DNA from: Adineta vaga | Lineage: Eukaryota > Animalia > Rotifera | Direction of reading: 5' to 3' | Length of the DNA: 64,000 bases | NCBI GenBank assembly: GCA_021613535.1 | Contig: CP075495.1 | Coordinates: 13,330,001 to 13,394,000 of the forward strand | Made by a program: the position numbers and the translations under genes | The notes under the pieces: model-generated | Seen by the model: the letters and a program-made list of their open reading frames with translations, nothing else | Database searches by the model: none | Told to the model about the DNA's origin: nothing | In this document: one piece after another, positions 1 through 12,800 of the stretch | Numbering within the stretch: position 1 is the first letter of the stretch | How the letters are laid out: every line of letters begins with the position of its first letter

Positions 1-3000
1 TTAGACAGATTTAATCAATAACATCAGTTAGATTGAATTTCATGTATTTGTATCGTCAGAAGAGAATTCTATCTACAACTATCTAATCTTATATCTTTGT
101 TCTCTAGTGAACCAATTCAATTTTCATCATTTGATCGTCAATATCATGACTACCTTGTTTTATCATCAGTCTATCCACTTTATCTCTGTTTAATTTATCG
201 TCAATGTTCTTGGATAATCAAAACTTTATTTATTCTAACTTGTTTATTAGTTCAATTAGTTCTTTTTGAATATATATGGTTAACAACAAATCTATATTTT
301 CCATCAATAAATCGTTTACATCATTATACAACATTTACATTGATTATATTTCATGGTATACTTTTAATTATTTCATCCTATGTTCGAGAATGGTTAGAAA
401 AAATCGATTTCGTCTGGCTTAAACAAGTTGATAATGAACGTTTAACGATTGTTCGACAACGTGATGAATTAGTTAAACAAACATCCGTATATTTTCCACA
501 ACGTGTTATTAATTATTATTTACGTATAGATTCTGAGACGGGTTTATCGCAACATTATCATCGAAAATATGATCGAATGGCTTTATTATATATGAATTTT
601 TCGTCAGTGAATATTGAACAACAATATATACTTATGGATTATTTGAATGATATTGAATATTTATTAAAAAATAATGAGAAATATATTCAAATTGTTATGC
701 ATAGAAAATCAACAATGAAAGAAATTATGTTTTCAATCGATACGAATACGGATGATTCAACAAAATCGATTCAACAATTAGTTGAACTTCTATTCCATTT
801 AGACGAACGTTTAAAACAGATTTCATCATCGACAATAAATCTTGCAGCTTGTTTACATATTGGTTGTGTACATGAAATTTTGATACATCTAGAAAATTAT
901 CCAAGAATTGATATTTGGAGTGAACAAATTGCACTTCTACAATTACTTATGACAAAAACACAAGTAAATCATTGTTTAACAACATCAGCTGTATATCATC
1001 AGTTAAATGAACTTTATCTATTTCGAACTGCTGGATCAGTTGTTAGTGGACAAATAAATAATACGCATATTTATTATTTACTTGGTCGTCTTATCGGAGA
1101 TAATGTCTTTCAGGTAAAAATACAATATTTAATCGTTGTTAAACATATTGTTAAGGTTGTATCTGATCCTAAAGGAAAAATAGTAATTTGTGACTTTATA
1201 GTCTAGACATTTAACACAAGAAAACAAGGTTTGAGGTGTATGTGTAGGGAATAGTATAATATTATAAAATTCCTGTGTAGGAAAAATAGTTCTACATCTT
1301 CCATTGTATCAATTGTTTTACTATGTAGAGCAAACAAACACATTTAGTAGATAATGAATTTTATTGTCCGAAATCGGTGATCAAGGTTTTCTTTTATATT
1401 CTTTGCCGTTTCATTATCGTTCGAAAAACTAAAAGTAAACAAACAAATCGACTCTAATATTTTCCGATCCAGTTCTATAATAATCCTATTTCTACTACCT
1501 ACTTTGAAGATCAAATATTTCTCGAATCATTTAGGGTCGTAATGCACTTCCATTAACAATTGGTCATACAAATATGGGTACTGTTCAAAAATCGTCCAGT
1601 ACAGATGATTCTCATCATTCACAATCATCACAATATCGTAGTAAATTGAATTCTCAAAAAGAAGATAATCATATACAAATGTCCACAACAACCACAAATA
1701 CAACTACAACATCATCATCTGGTATTCACAATGAACAACAAAGTCTCTTGAAACATCCATCATCACGAAAACATGTTCGAATATCGAATCATTTTCCAAC
1801 AATTGAAAATCCATCCTATCGTCAAACACTTTTACAAGCATTGAATGGTACAACTAACAATAATACTAATAATACTAATCAATCTCATCAAGAAATTAAT
1901 CCAATCAAAAAGATTTCGAATCGTTTAATTGCAAAAAAAGAATTATCACCATCAGTTTTAAAAGATTATGTACCACGAATGATTCATTTAAGTGATAATA
2001 GTTGTTGGTCATCAAGAGAAGCAATGACACCATCAGAAGCCAGTGGTAGTAAATGTTTAATATTAACACAACAAATGCTTAATGGATCAACAGGTATAAT
2101 CGATAATCTTTCTAATTTTCTAAATATTGCTTTCTTTATGTTTGCTATAGATGATAATAGCCGATGTAAATCTACACCACCACCGCCACAACCATTGTCA
2201 AGAGCTGTTGTATCAAATCGTAATTTATCAACAGAAAGAAAGAGTTTCACAGAAGAAGATTTTCGTCAATTACTTCACGAAAAATCGTCGAAAGAAATAA
2301 TCAATCCTTCTCGAAGTTTATCTACGACAAATGAAGAAACAGCTTCGTCTTTTTCTGGTTGGGATGATATACCACCATCACCAATACCAAGTATTAAATC
2401 GAATCATGTCATTATACAACAACAAGAATCAATTAAATCTTCACCAGCACAACCACCTATTATTGATTGTTATTATCCTCGTCGTCCATGTGATTTATCA
2501 TTTACAGTTAATATGACAACAACTGAAGATGATAGTAGTAGTCGTACGGATACAAAATCAACAGTTGTTCATTCACCAGCATCAACAGTTGCTACAATAA
2601 CTTCATCTATGCCACTTGCTCTTTCACCTCCCGTAAATATTGCTAAACCAGTTGTTGTTACTTCACAAACACCTTCACCATCGCAACCATTACAGAAACA
2701 ACCTGTTATGAGATATCGACCAATGCCATTTGATTTAGCACGTAAATTAGTTGCGGAAACATCTGAGAGTGCTCTTTCTGACATCTCTGTTGAACATCAA
2801 CATGATCCATGGACACAAAATATAGCTTATCAATCAAAACATCCACAAAGAACACGTCTTTCATCTAGTTATAATAATTTACAAGATCTTGTGCAAATAC
2901 ATGATGTATCAAAGTAAATATATTAACATCCTTTTCTTTTTTATAGTTCAAATACTTATCTATTCATTTATTCTATTTATAGATTTCTTCCAAAAGAAAC

Positions 3001-3676
3001 TCAATTATCATCAACAGCACAGAGCGATTTATTACAACGTTGGCTTGAAGATCAACTAACGTTATTTCGTCATCAAGTTAAACAAACACCACCGTCATCT
3101 GCGAGAAAAAATAAACGATTTTCAACGCATGTCATCATTCAAAATGATTCAACTGATGATGAATCAGAAACTATTAATGAAAATACTTTTAATGCTATAA
3201 CAAATGGATCAAATTTACCATTGAAACCTCGATCATCAACGAAACGTTCATATGATCATGTCAGATATAAATCGTTACGAAAAAATCCAACTCAAACTAC
3301 ATCTCATCTTATTCGACATGAATCACTCAAACATCGAAATCGACCATTATTATTCGAGCATACTTCTCAATTTAATAAAGTCACAGGAAATCATCATATA
3401 AATCATATGAAAAAACCTTCACGTCGAACGGATTCAGCTTCAATGCCTCGATCAGATTTAAGTGATATCTCATCATCTCGAGCAGATAATTTATCTGAAA
3501 GTGTTATATCAAATCTTGAATCGGAATATGATAATATTTATACTCAACCACAAAATTCAAATACAACGCCATCAATTATGACAAATTCACAGATTTTAAG
3601 TGATGATGATGACGATGATGATGAAACAACTTTAGCGACAACAATAGCAACATCGACAAATCGGTGTTACTTTTAG
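1..3676 (+). CDS. Degenerate adenylyl-cyclase-like membrane protein (TM helices, class III cyclase-homology domain, long Ser/Thr/Pro-rich tail); 5' part lies outside the window
   Basis: Exons ~7-1113, 1535-2093, 2151-2913 and 2983-3676 splice in frame via GT-AG introns. After the TM segments, 'YFPQRVINYYL...YHRKYDRMALLY...LAACLHIGCV...PRIDIWS...' follows the layout of the adenylyl cyclase C2 domain (ILPAHVA..HQSY..RVGINHGPV..PQYDIWG). Confidence 0.7.
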
Positions 3677-4136: not shown

Positions 4137-4464
4137 TTACTTGGAATAGCATTGTCAGAGTCAAGATCTATCTAATTTTAAGCAAAAGCATCACATTGCT
4201 TCCTATATATATATATATATACCAGAAATTCCGATTTCTTCCCTAGTCTTATGTTTCTTTGCTTAACATCAACGAGTGTCGACGTCTATATTTTCCAAGC
4301 ACAATTTTAGCTTTTTTCTTTCCAGACTTTGTTCTTTCTCCGACTTGATCATTGTTTCATCTAACTATCCAATCAAATCTTACTTATTGTAATTATTATT
4401 TAGATTTATTATAGAACATCTCGACTCTTCGATATTAACAAAAAGACCAAAATTCTAAGCAATA

Positions 4465-6561
4465 ATGGGCGCTTGCAAATCAAAACAATTCGGTTGTTGT
4501 ATTGCAATTGATAGTGATGAATCGATAATATTAGATAAACCAACAGGTAAAGAAACTCGTCATGGTCCTGGTTGGTTTTGTTTTCCAAATTGGTGGGAAG
4601 CTCAAGTTGTTAAATCTATCCCATTACAAAACAATCAATACCTTGTGATTAAACATGTTATTCTTCCCGAAAGCAATCGTAAATCACGATCAGAAGAAAT
4701 CGCTTTACAAAAACGTTCAACACTAAATGAGAATGATGAACTATTGAATGATCCAGATATGCAATTACTTGAAATTGTTCGTGGACCAAAAATTTATCAT
4801 ATAAATAATCCTTATGATCGTATTAGTGAAGTAAAATCTATGATAGATCTATCCGTTACACAATATATTATCGTCACGGATAAATTGACAGGAGCCAAAG
4901 CCATCGAATCAGGTCCGAAATTATTTTGTCCAAAACCGTATGATGTAGTTAGTGAGATTCACAATATGTACAATTTATCATCAACAGAATATATTATTGT
5001 AACTGATGAATCAAAAGGAGAAAAATTCACAGTTTTTGGTAAATCTTTATTAATAAATCTAATCATTTTTTTTTATTGGATATCAAACTATTTTCTAGGT
5101 CCAAAATTATTTTTACCTAGAGCTTATGATAAAGTATCGGCAATTTATAATTATATCGTTCTTAATCACGCACAATATTGTCGTATTATTGATACTCGTA
5201 CAGGTGTTATGCGTATTGAACGAGGTCCTCAAACATTTTCACTTGGACCATATGAAGCATTGAAAGAAGATAATCATCAAACTATCTTCAATATTATTAA
5301 TATCGATACAGAAAATGCAGTACTTGTTAAAAATCTTGATACGGGTATGGATGAATTAATAACAATTCCACAAAAATTTATTCCATCATTTACACAAACA
5401 TTTATTGAAATAAGAAAATTAATCAAACTAGCACCATGTAAGTGTTTCTTTCTAAAAACTAAAGAATGATTATTGATTTCGAATGAAATTAATCTAGATG
5501 AAAATATGATATTAATTGACAAGGATGGTCAACATATATTAAAAAATGGTTTGAAAGATAAATCATTTTTTCTCTATCCCTATCAACAAACTTATACTCA
5601 ACAATGGTCAAATGATCTAAAAAAAGATCATCAATCAACCTCAACTGTTAATCGTTTTGATACAAGAAATCAATGTAAACTAAAATTATTTTTCGAGATT
5701 TTTTTCTTTTTTTAAAATAATATTCTTTCTTTTTTCAATAAGATATGGATTATGAATTTCTTGTTCGTACGGCAGATAATGTTGAAATCATCCTTGATGT
5801 TTCTATCTTCTGGCAAATAACAGATTTATATAAACTTGTTCTTGTTACACAAGATCCTCCAGAAGATATTTGTAAGTCAAACTGATTACATAAAGTTCAC
5901 TTTTGTTTAAATTCATTGATGTATATTTCTAGGTAATCATACACGTTCGGAAATTTTAAGTCAAGTATCAAAATATAATATGAAAGAATTTATGGAATTA
6001 CCAAATAGTAAATTAATTGCTTCGGTTAATTCCGATAAAGATGATTCATTTTATGAATCTCGTGGTGTTAATGTTATACGCGTTGAAATCTTACAAAAAC
6101 GTTGTAAAGATCCGGAAATTCAAAAGATTTTCAAGCAAATTATTGACGAGAAAACTAATCGTATAAAAAATATTGAAAAACAAGAAGCAGAAAATGAAGT
6201 CAAATTACGTAATTTAAATGGTCAAATTGATGCTGAAAAATTAGTTGGAACATTATTGAAAATAAAGAAAGAAAATGAACGACAGGAAAATGTTGCTGAT
6301 GGTATTGCTGAGGGTAGTCGTATTCAAAATTTCATTGGTAATCTTGGCGAGGATATACCATTAGAAAAGAAATTACAAGTTTATTTTGATATACAAAATA
6401 CCAAACGTTTAGATTTGTTAGCACATTCAAATACAACTTTATATTTAACACCAAAAGAAGTTGATACGAAAGTTATCAATGTCAATACAATTCATCCAGT
6501 CAATGAATCAAACCAATCAACTCAATCACATATTCAAACCAGAATGAATATAGAAGTTTAA
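4465..6561 (+). CDS. Major-vault-protein-repeat / SPFH (band 7) domain protein with predicted N-terminal lipidation
   Basis: Exons 4465-5038, 5099-5437, 5498-5674, 5743-5871 and 5933-6561 are in frame. ~45-aa beta repeats (YIIVTDKLTGAKAIESGPKLFCPKPYD; YIIVTDESKGEKFTVFGPKLFLPRAYD; YCRIIDTRTGVMRIERGPQTFSLGPYE) precede an SPFH/shoulder-like 'VRTADNVEIILDVSIFWQI...DPPEDICNHTRSEILSQVS...RGVNVIRVEI' and a coiled coil. Starts MGACKS. Confidence 0.75.
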
Positions 6562-7115
6562 TGAAACAGAAAGAAAATTTACCTATTTCTCCTTTCTTAT
6601 GAAACAATTATCTTCTCATACCTTCTATTCGAATTCTTACTAGAAATAAACATAGTATTAATCAACAAAAATAAATCATGAAAAGAAGAATTCCCTAATC
6701 AGAATAACTTCCATGAAGAATACAATAGCAAAATATCGATACGAAACAGAGATATATAGATTCATACTCACATTCACCTATTAACGCAACATGGAACTTA
6801 TGTTGAAATCTATTTTTGTTTGCATTGAATTAGAAAGCAAAACTAGTTATTAGTAGTGCAATAATGAATATTGGAATGTTTACTGAATACTTCTCAATAC
6901 AAGAAAAACATCTAAAAATAAGAAATCTTCGATGAAATTTTTTTCTTTCTTCGTTCTCTTTTTATTTCAAATAAAATCATAAAAAATAAAACGAAAAAAA
7001 AAATAAAAACCTTGATCTTATACAAAAAAACGAAATCTTTTAGTTACACATATTTCTATCGAAAAACCCTACATTAACAAACGACTTCTATTCTACGAAT
7101 CTATCTAATTAAATC

Positions 7116-9865: not shown

Positions 9866-12800
9866 ATGGCTAATGATTTACAACAACTTGCTTTGATAGA
9901 AAAAACTTCACATTTAAAGTAAATACATGAATAAAATAGTCATTTATTTCAGAGAAATTTATCTTTTGCTCCTTTCGTCATAGTTATTTACGTGATTTTC
10001 GCGTTGAACAATGTCAATTATTTCTTCAACATAAATGCACACAGTAAGAAAATAAATAATGATGATTTGATTGTTTTAAGACAAAAATAAAAATTTCATT
10101 TATAGACATCGTCCATTTTCATGTTTCTATTGGCATTTTCAAAATCAACGTCGTCGTCGTCCATTTCGTCGAAAAGATGGAACATTTTCATATGACCCTG
10201 ATTTTTATTGTAACGATTATGATGAACAAAGTGGTGTTTGTCTAAATGGTGACGAGTAAGTTTTACCATCCAATTCGTTGTTTGTTTGTTTTTTATACAA
10301 TTGATATCAATATTTGGTTCTTAGTTGTTTATTATTACATCGAAATGCAAATGATACAGAAAAACGTTATCATTTACGATATTATAAAACAGGCTTATGT
10401 ACACATGATTCAGATGCGAAAGGAAATTGTCTTAAAAATGGTCCACATTGCTCATCTGCTCATGGTGCCAATGATTTACGGCAACCCGTTCTTGACAGTC
10501 GAGAGCTTCAAAATAGTGATTTAGCTTTAGAAAGATTAGCACGTCTATGTATTAGTCTAGAAAATGAACGGGCTTTAAATGATGATCCAAAATGGAGTGG
10601 TAAGATGAAACGATCAATTTTATATGTATTAATATTCAAAATATCATTTAGATTCACATTATGTTCTGGCAAATTATAAAACTGAACCTTGTAAACGTCC
10701 ACCACGTTTATGTCGACAAGGTTATGCTTGTCCACAATATCATAATCCTCGTGATCGTCGACGTAATCCATCAATATTTAAATATAAGTAAGAATAAATG
10801 AAAAACAAAATTGCGATTTGATTTGAAACTATATCTAAAGATCAACACCATGTCCACATGTAAAACAAAGTGATGAATGGATTGATCCAACTGTATGTGA
10901 ATCTGGTGATAGCTGTAAATATTGTCATACTCGTACTGAACAGCAATTTCATCCTGAGGTTTGTTTGCTTCGTATTGTTTAGTATCAATCATTTTAAACA
11001 ATTTCTTTGTTGTAGATTTATAAATCAACTAAATGCAATGATGTTTCTGTTACTGGATATTGTCCACGTGGACCATTCTGTGCATTTGCTCATATAGAAC
11101 GTATGTATACTGAATTCAGCTTTATAAAGAAGATAGGATAATTTTGATTGAAAGAATTGAATAGTTCGAGAATACGAACGATTAAGTTGTTTTAATTTTT
11201 TTAGAAGAATTAAAATCTTACAGAGATTTTGATCTTCATTATACAAGTGAATTGCCCTTATCCTCATTTATACCAATACCCGAAGATAAAGAAGTTGACA
11301 TAATCGATGTAAGTTTTATCTAATCTTTATAAATTTCAAAATCGATTCTACAAATTCATTTTCTTAGACATTACGAAACATTCCAAAAAAATCTTCACAA
11401 TCATCTACATTTGAAGTTGGATCATATCCAGGTGCTACTATGAAAACACTGGAACAACATATAGCTAATACAAATGTAAATTAACGAATTTTTGTCATTC
11501 TTTTTTCCATAGTCTTTCTTTTGACTAGTCTCTTGTAACAAATTATTCTGGTAGTGGTTCATTTACTATTCAAGATATGGTTTCACATACATCACCTTCA
11601 TCATCACAACAACAGCTTTTTCGTCAATATTATCAGCCAACACCCACAACTTTACCATCACAAACACCATCGTCATCATCATTTCTTAATGATCAATTTC
11701 TTCTATCAGCTGCATTCGCTGCTAGTCATTCTTATCCTCCGCCATCATCATTTTTCTCAACACTTGCTGCATCAAATCTTCTTTCATCAATCAATGCTCA
11801 TATGCATTCAATATCACCTGAACAACAAATAACAGCAACAATAACAAATTTGAATGATAATTATGATCAACAATCCCTGCCAAACGATGTGAAAAATCTT
11901 ATTGGATCTTCCTTAACAGCTATTGGATTAGATAATGTAAATGAAGATGAATTTGATAAAGCAGCAACCAATGAACAAAATAGTGAACTTTTATTAATTG
12001 ATAATGATATTGAAAATTTTGAACGTTCAACAACACCTGCAACAAATAATACATCACCGACACATTTAACAACAATTTCTTCCTCATCATCAACAAATCC
12101 AATGACAAGACCAGTGAATATTCCACATTCATTCACACATGAACATTTTTCACATTCTTCATCGGCAAAATCACCATTCGATGCACCAAATCAATTATTT
12201 GATGGAACTTTAGAATCGGTATGTGATTGTGAAAAGAAAGTACGAATAAGAAGATGATAAAACGCAAATCATTATGAGTTATCGTCGTTGTAAATATTTC
12301 TTGTTCTCTTTTGAGTAGAATTCAAATCTTCTGAGAAAAATGCCAGAATACTATAAAAATAAATGTAAATTTTAATCTTTTCTAATGATGCTAATTCTAT
12401 CGAGGTTATCGTGTTTTTCCCGGAAATAGACTCTTGAGAATAATAAAACTTTCAATTTGATTCAAGTATTAAGTAAATAATGTATAAGTGCATGAATTAT
12501 TTGTAGACACAAACATACTAGAGAGGAGAATTCCGATTTGTTTTCATTAGCATTACAATCGAGAAAAAAAACGGAATGCAGGGAAAATATTTTGTTCTTA
12601 TTTCAAAATCCGATGAAGATCGAACATGATCGTTTGAATAATGTAAAGAGAAATATCGAATTGTCTATGATTTAATTTAGCCAATTGATACACCTTTTCC
12701 GGAACCGTCAACATCAAGTGGTGGTAGTCAACGTCCTGGCGAATTGTATAAAATGGCAGGTTTTAGTCAAGATCTTCCGACTTCAACACATCATTTTCAA

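Follow-up and report, generated by a model that had tools for sequence, protein, structure and literature searches.

The DNA analysed here, referred to as the window, is a stretch of 64,000 nucleotides from the bdelloid rotifer Adineta vaga (contig C2, positions 13,330,001–13,394,000), and the subject of this study is a gene on its forward strand (window positions 4465–6561) that encodes a protein related to the major vault protein (MVP) within the SPFH/MVP superfamily. An earlier note, made from the sequence without database searches, had placed at this site an intron-bearing gene for a vault-like protein of about 620 amino acids; the gene, its position and its introns were confirmed, and the protein was recovered as predicted, its exact length being 615 amino acids. 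The gene consists of five exons separated by four phase 1 introns with GT..AG borders (Table 1). The exon translations are exact consecutive parts of the NCBI entry 'hypothetical protein I4U23_009916 [Adineta vaga]' (P0036), and the junction residues G192, Y305, Y364 and C407 match the prediction. This identical database protein was used for the whole-protein analyses, and the exons were searched singly. The gene is single-copy in the genome, which comprises 100.8 Mb in six contigs. The G+C content of the region is about 29%, and the composition of the gene is like that of its surroundings.

All four introns were spliced at the predicted sites in assembled contigs of the public runs X1, X12 and X6, which come from three studies, and in run X5 the last splice joint only was recovered. 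Since the transcript evidence consists of assembled contigs, it establishes the presence and splicing of the transcript and gives no expression level. These data bear directly on the suspicion of contaminating viral DNA or an assembly artefact, which arises from the viral nature of the closest non-bdelloid relatives (see below). Spliceosomal introns are removed in RNA-derived contigs, the gene is located on a 16-Mb chromosome contig with animal genes on both sides, and orthologues with the same introns are present in the assemblies of four other bdelloid species. On the basis of the splicing in contigs and the shared introns, contamination or artefact was rejected, its probability being negligible.

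From the N- to the C-terminus, P0036 shows an acylation-type start, seven MVP-type beta repeats, a Band_7/SPFH domain, a helix of 77 residues, a shorter helix and a conserved C-terminal motif. The repeats, of about 42 amino acids each, extend over roughly residues 13–350; they were recognized by eye, and an internal repeat match had 37% identity (E 9e-5), in line with the six to seven beta repeats counted previously. In the AlphaFold2 (AF2) model, with a mean predicted local distance difference test (pLDDT) score of 79 and values above 90 in the repeats, beta repeats run from residue 12 to about residue 360, and an alpha/beta SPFH domain extends up to residue 465 and is followed by helices at residues 467–543 and 550–571; residues 1–9, 68–95 and 582–615 are disordered.

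The Pfam matches of single exons were weak (Vault_3, E 0.0056; Band_7, E 1.5e-4), and the case had to be made with a family profile and with the database protein at full length. In P0036, Band_7 was matched with an E-value of 1.2e-10 (42.1 bits versus a cut-off of 23.6), Vault_3 remained below the Pfam cut-off, and MVP_shoulder (PF11978) gave no match at E 0.01. In 27 aligned relatives, Vault_3 was detected in 24 and Band_7 in 22, and the Rotaria orthologue matched Vault_3 (E 1e-3) and MVP_shoulder (E 0.05, 14 bits versus a cut-off of 25), both below cut-off. A phmmer search of the PDB with one orthologue reached MVP marginally (E about 0.01). When the family profile was compared with the PDB sequences, MVP was matched with an E-value of 7e-20, over the repeats and, as a weaker stretch, across shoulder and helix, and matches were also obtained to archaeal stomatin-type SPFH proteins and QmcA (about 1e-5) and to stomatin (about 1e-3).

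The structural comparisons were in agreement with the profile. In a Foldseek search of the PDB the top 12 matches were full-length MVP (1e-23 to 1e-19), MVP R1–R7 was matched at 1e-10, and after MVP came HflK/C, stomatin, prohibitin, erlin and flotillin (1e-10 to 1e-6). VIA-align placed residues 7–541 of the model on residues 133–722 of human MVP (Z 18.8 over 483 residues), with Z values of about 16 over 304–312 residues on the MVP R1–R7 crystal and of 11–13.6 on SPFH cage proteins. Kinship with MVP is far above chance, and the architecture read from the sequence in the earlier note, with MVP repeats, an SPFH shoulder and a shorter helix, was borne out by the family profile, the AF2 model, Foldseek and VIA-align. 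If the shoulder is kept in register, all seven repeats align to MVP residues 113–520, that is, to R3–R9, so that the MVP waist repeats R1–R2 are without counterpart. The wall helices of stomatin, HflK/C and QmcA can be aligned to the predicted long helix (profile, AF2 model and VIA-align), which, as modelled, corresponds to the SPFH wall helix or to the start of the MVP cap helix.

When the A. vaga genome was scanned with MVP_shoulder, about six loci scored above the cut-off; they are on C1, C3 and C6, and the window gene is not among them. The rotifer thus has ordinary vault genes and, separate from them, the window protein, which is not an MVP orthologue and which the tree groups with viral and protist proteins; the description of the protein as distinct from canonical animal MVP proved correct. 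The MVP_shoulder loci include C6:8189869-8193145, C3:8229990-8233127, C3:17983221-17983625 and C1:16387413-16387697. Two of the loci are close pairs on opposite strands, and stop codons occur in some of the matches, where they may reflect introns or decayed copies.

The N-terminus, MGACKSKQFGCC, fits PROSITE pattern PS00008 at the true start of the protein (MGACKSK) and has Cys at positions 4, 11 and 12. The PS00008 pattern was present in all ten bdelloid orthologues examined and, by a rough reckoning, would be fitted by about 1% of random N-termini. Among the full-length non-bdelloid members (n = 107), the pattern was found in 26, all but one of them (25 of 26) with Cys at positions 3–12, and a transmembrane-like segment was present within the first 330 residues in 47, mostly N-terminal and often Cys-rich. 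An anchor-type start, either acylation-like motif or transmembrane segment, was thus counted in 73 of the 107, and acylation-type starts also occur in viral and euglenozoan (euglenid and diplonemid) relatives. That distant branches carry two kinds of anchor in the same position argues most strongly for tethering in the function of the family, which we infer from sequence patterns. The acylation-type N-terminus predicted earlier was upheld by the PS00008 match, by its conservation in ten bdelloids, by its recurrence in viral and euglenozoan relatives and by the transmembrane helix found elsewhere; the window protein is accordingly a predicted substrate of myristoylation and palmitoylation.

Tethering as a general trait of the family is weakened by the 34 of 107 non-bdelloid members that have neither anchor type, and these include the Terrestrivirus subclade, located inside the viral clade that is sister to the bdelloids. 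Some of the 34 are wrong start calls, as in P0041, in which an internal MGNCISC matches the MGCCCSC start of an orthologue from a giant-virus metagenome-assembled genome (GVMAG). The members of the Terrestrivirus subclade (P0039, P0040, P0043, P0044 and P0045) have no acylation motif, no transmembrane segment and one extra repeat; this subclade may have lost the anchor. As a separate observation, a PBZ zinc finger (PF10283, E 2.5e-11), of the poly-ADP-ribose-binding type, is N-terminal in the transmembrane-anchored protist transcript P0057, and was recognized by eye in P0155 and P0141; its presence in P0057 parallels PARP4 as a vault partner.

The fact that MVP is the best structural match across repeats, shoulder and helix would also suit a soluble small vault, in which a diverged MVP paralogue builds closed free particles and makes no use of its N-terminal motif as an anchor. 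This explanation is considered unlikely, given that the repeats align to R3–R9 with no counterpart of R1–R2, that the Pfam match is to Band_7 and not to MVP_shoulder, that the helix has half the length of that of MVP, and that a lipid motif or transmembrane helix has been conserved in branches far apart.

The extent of the family was determined by an exhaustive profile search, which returned 351 clusters at E ≤ 1e-30, 910 at E ≤ 1e-10 and 1760 at E ≤ 1e-3. In a word search with the Rotaria protein as query, the bdelloid orthologues (Rotaria, Adineta and Didymodactylos) showed 76–94% identity, and the next relatives, including Terrestrivirus5_133 and protist transcripts, 26–41%. Intronless copies were present in Terrestrivirus and in seven IMG/VR giant-virus contigs of 22–509 kb. 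The contig context was examined for five members (P0041, P0047, P0042, P0069 and P0077). Four of these contigs are Mimivirus-like, with densely packed ORFans together with genes for aminoacyl-tRNA synthetases (aaRS), SUI1, MutS, SNF2, UvrD or CTP synthase; the fifth (P0077) is short and dense, without such marker genes. The best matches in a BFVD fold search were two Harvfovirus proteins. Neither the rotifer nor the Terrestrivirus protein had a match in PHROGs, and a pattern scan of 185,579 prokaryote genomes, of limited sensitivity, revealed no relative of the subfamily. More distant proteins with Vault_3 and Band_7 appear in ESM Atlas rows labelled as diatoms, haptophytes, some bacteria and phages, such labels being weak evidence. 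Literature searches yielded no paper dealing with this family or with vault-like proteins of giant viruses. The family, which is large and undescribed, occurs in protists and giant viruses, and a lipid-anchor motif or a transmembrane helix usually precedes the first repeat.

Phylogenetic trees were constructed with FastTree on 98 rows and with IQ-TREE, under LG+C20 with posterior mean site frequencies (PMSF), on 35 rows. The bdelloids were monophyletic (100/100) and sister to one viral subclade (99/98), and both were placed together with a second viral subclade inside a clade with 100/100 support; the next clade outward was formed by euglenid and diplonemid transcripts. The viral rows held together in 0 of 200 bootstrap trees, and the approximately unbiased (AU) test rejected the tree uniting all non-bdelloid members of the clade (p 0.017). 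Wherever the context is readable, the clade containing the bdelloids is giant-virus-encoded. The nesting of the bdelloid genes within a giant-virus clade is well supported, and an ancient capture from a giant virus is the most likely source of the gene. Of the horizontal origin proposed in the earlier note, the transfer itself stands, the gene being nested among intronless giant-virus genes; the donor to which the tree points is a giant virus and not a bacterium or a protist directly. The closest non-bdelloid relatives are viral.

Four observations weigh against a viral origin. The group rejected in the AU test was named post hoc, with the tree already seen, and its p value of 0.017 is moderate. 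The members P0038, P0039, P0081, P0096, P0121 and P0132 of the viral clade have no readable context, so that unseen cellular hosts could be among them. One ESM Atlas row, of the more distant Band_7 family, is labelled Mollusca, although this label is weak. Finally, the bdelloids are the sole named animal matches in a word-limited search only, other animal genomes not having been searched.

This last point, together with the existence of cellular members (the euglenid and diplonemid transcripts and sequences of EukProt and MMETSP), would leave room for the vertical descent of an ancient eukaryotic gene, kept by bdelloids and lost by other animals, of which viruses took host copies independently; giant viruses often acquire host genes. 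Vertical descent is nevertheless regarded as rather unlikely, since the bdelloids are placed within the viral clade and not beside the protists (AU test, above), no named animal besides bdelloids appeared in the word search, and loss in almost all other animals would be required. The root of the tree bears on the reverse transfer, in which a virus of a bdelloid ancestor or relative took the host gene, which then spread among viruses. The outgroup root puts viral subclade 2 below the pair formed by the bdelloids and subclade 1, and, as subclade 2 branches earlier, reverse transfer would need two captures or another root. The long stem branch of the bdelloids (0.69) allows some misrooting, and several clade members are of unknown host; against this, diversity is far greater among the viral copies than among those of bdelloids, and the next relatives outward are euglenozoan, not animal. 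Reverse transfer is therefore considered quite improbable, and capture from a giant virus is the preferred origin.

With regard to the age of the gene in bdelloids, all four intron positions are common to A. vaga, A. ricciae and Rotaria. The Didymodactylos orthologue has eight introns, two of which (residues 364 and 407) are at Adineta positions. As these two positions are common to three genera, the gene was present and intron-bearing before the lineages split. The intronisation after acquisition that the earlier note had assumed is in accordance with the four spliced introns, the two positions in common with Didymodactylos and the intronless state of the viral copies. Among bdelloid orthologues the ratio of non-synonymous to synonymous substitution rates (dN/dS) was 0.055–0.21, with dS near saturation, and the bdelloid gene is under purifying selection. 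With respect to intron length, all eight introns of Didymodactylos (L023 8001-10411) are short, and in Rotaria (L024 8001-15730) the four positions are retained, with introns 1 and 4 enlarged to about 3.5 and 2.2 kb. The features of the gene in A. vaga are detailed in Table 1.

Table 1. Features of the vault-like gene of Adineta vaga, in window coordinates.
Feature	Position	Strand	Evidence
5′ untranslated region (UTR), minimum extent	4402..4464	+	X1 and X12 contigs start at 4402
Exon 1 (aa 1–191 and first base of Gly192; acylation motif, repeats 1–4)	4465..5038	+	P0036 identity, contig splice joint
N-terminus MGACKSKQFGCC, PS00008-type with Cys4, Cys11, Cys12	4465..4500	+	Pattern match
Disordered insertion loop within repeat 2 (aa 68–95)	4666..4749	+	pLDDT < 50; length differs among relatives
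Intron 1, 60 nt, GT..AG, phase 1	5039..5098	+	Contigs; position common to A. ricciae and Rotaria, not Didymodactylos
Exon 2 (aa 192–305; repeats 4–7)	5099..5437	+	P0036, contigs; weak Vault_3 match, E 0.0056
Intron 2, 60 nt	5438..5497	+	P0036, contigs
Exon 3 (aa 305–364; last repeat, SPFH start)	5498..5674	+	P0036, contigs
Intron 3, 68 nt	5675..5742	+	Contigs; position common to Adineta, Rotaria and Didymodactylos
Exon 4 (aa 364–407; SPFH core)	5743..5871	+	Band_7 E 1.5e-4 on exon alone; P0036, contigs
Intron 4, 61 nt	5872..5932	+	Contigs; position common to all three genera
Exon 5 (aa 407–615 and stop; SPFH end, helices, C-terminal motif)	5933..6561	+	P0036, contigs
SPFH/Band_7 domain (aa ~353–465; across introns 3 and 4)	5641..6108	+	Band_7 aa 353–494, E 1.2e-10; stomatin SPFH Z 12–13
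Predicted long helix (aa 467–543)	6112..6342	+	AF2 model; aligned to MVP as far as residue 722
Predicted second helix (aa 550–571)	6361..6426	+	AF2 model
Conserved C-terminal motif LYLTPKEVD (aa 576–584)	6439..6465	+	Family alignment; unstructured in monomer model
3′ UTR, to at least 6800	6562..6800	+	Spliced contigs extend past 6800

Upstream of the gene, the long open frames at window 97–3676 (+) had no Pfam match at E 0.001. The downstream neighbour, at window 10314–10679 (+), encodes an Unkempt-like CCCH zinc finger (PF25427, E 2e-23), and a metazoan Unkempt-like gene is located downstream in both A. vaga and A. ricciae. The possibility of a giant endogenous viral island was rejected, the neighbouring genes being ordinary animal genes. 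Allelic or strain differences between runs are concentrated at window 4684–4921, in and after the loop of repeat 2, where the contigs split into short alternative pieces. One X5 and one X12 contig touch both window 4384–4408 and window 6258–6276, in reverse order and with unrelated flanks; these contacts are probably chance matches of 19–25 nt from another locus.

Taken as a whole, the data are probably best explained by an expressed gene of the SPFH/MVP superfamily, of viral origin, whose product would form an acylated, membrane-seated ring or dome. The gene would have passed from a Mimivirus-like giant virus (Imitervirales) to a bdelloid ancestor and would have gained its introns after the capture. 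The protein would be myristoylated and palmitoylated and attached to a membrane on its cytosolic side. In SPFH proteins, lateral contacts between SPFH domains and between helices build rings and domes that sit on membranes, and the MVP repeats of the vault wall are packed laterally as well (PMC13100048; PMC12624060). From this lateral packing in both parent families, the subunits of the present family probably assemble side by side as well and, by analogy with SPFH cages and vault halves, would make a ring or dome. Its open N-terminal rim would rest on the membrane and its top would be closed by the SPFH domains and helices, and the resulting tall, SPFH-type 'half vault' would fence off a patch of membrane. 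It may reasonably be guessed that, in giant viruses, such a dome serves to organise membranes derived from the host.

A wider proposal, which is put forward tentatively, is that the family consists of membrane-seated 'half vaults' that are living intermediates between SPFH cages and free vaults. Vaults would then be such a dome minus the anchor and plus the two waist repeats that join the halves, the viruses, while infecting a cell, would organise membranes with it, and the bdelloid gene would be a domesticated viral copy. The MVP repeats are set between an anchor motif and an SPFH domain, so that both architectures are joined in one protein, and an origin of vaults from membrane SPFH cages becomes directly testable. 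The data also point to a possible membrane-scaffolding protein of Mimivirus-like viruses, for which no paper discussing such a protein was found, and provide a well-supported case of an animal that has retained a giant-virus gene under long selection. New here are the size of the family, the anchor types throughout it, the nesting in giant viruses and the age of the gene in bdelloids.

Compared with MVP, which is its top match by profile and by fold, the window protein has the same succession of tandem MVP-type repeats, SPFH-like shoulder and long helix. It differs in having seven repeats versus nine in MVP, which include R1–R2, in a domain that scores as Band_7 and not as MVP_shoulder, and in a helix of 77 residues, about half of the MVP cap helix, which has roughly 155 residues in the rat vault structure. 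The sequence identity is 12–16%, and the gene is separate from the canonical MVP genes of the rotifer. The repeats R1–R2 are those joining the two vault halves, and for MVP no membrane motif has been described (PMC13100048), whereas a lipid-anchor motif is located at the N-terminus of the window protein.

With the SPFH cage proteins (stomatin, HflK/C, prohibitin, erlin, flotillin and QmcA) the window protein shares the SPFH domain, a wall helix of similar length, a conserved C-terminal piece and an N-terminal membrane anchor, which in the window protein is a predicted motif; flotillin is likewise held by lipid, without a transmembrane helix (PMC13100048). The difference lies in the about 340 residues of MVP repeats placed between anchor and SPFH domain, owing to which the SPFH domain could not rest directly on the membrane, unlike in the known cages.

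Other compact vault-like proteins have been described in Naegleria, with MVP-like proteins of 530 and 559 amino acids (PMC3595041), and in archaea, with one MVP repeat and an SPFH domain in about 320–400 amino acids (bioRxiv 10.64898/2026.04.01.715805). These proteins, too, are smaller than MVP, and in them an MVP repeat or an MVP-like fold occurs together with a shoulder domain in Naegleria and with an SPFH domain in archaea. Judged by their descriptions only, they differ from the present family in that membrane anchors and giant-virus or animal copies are not described there. The MVP homologues of gliding bacteria also carry MVP repeats and a band-7-like domain outside eukaryotes (bioRxiv 10.1101/872010), but they are near full-length homologues of MVP.

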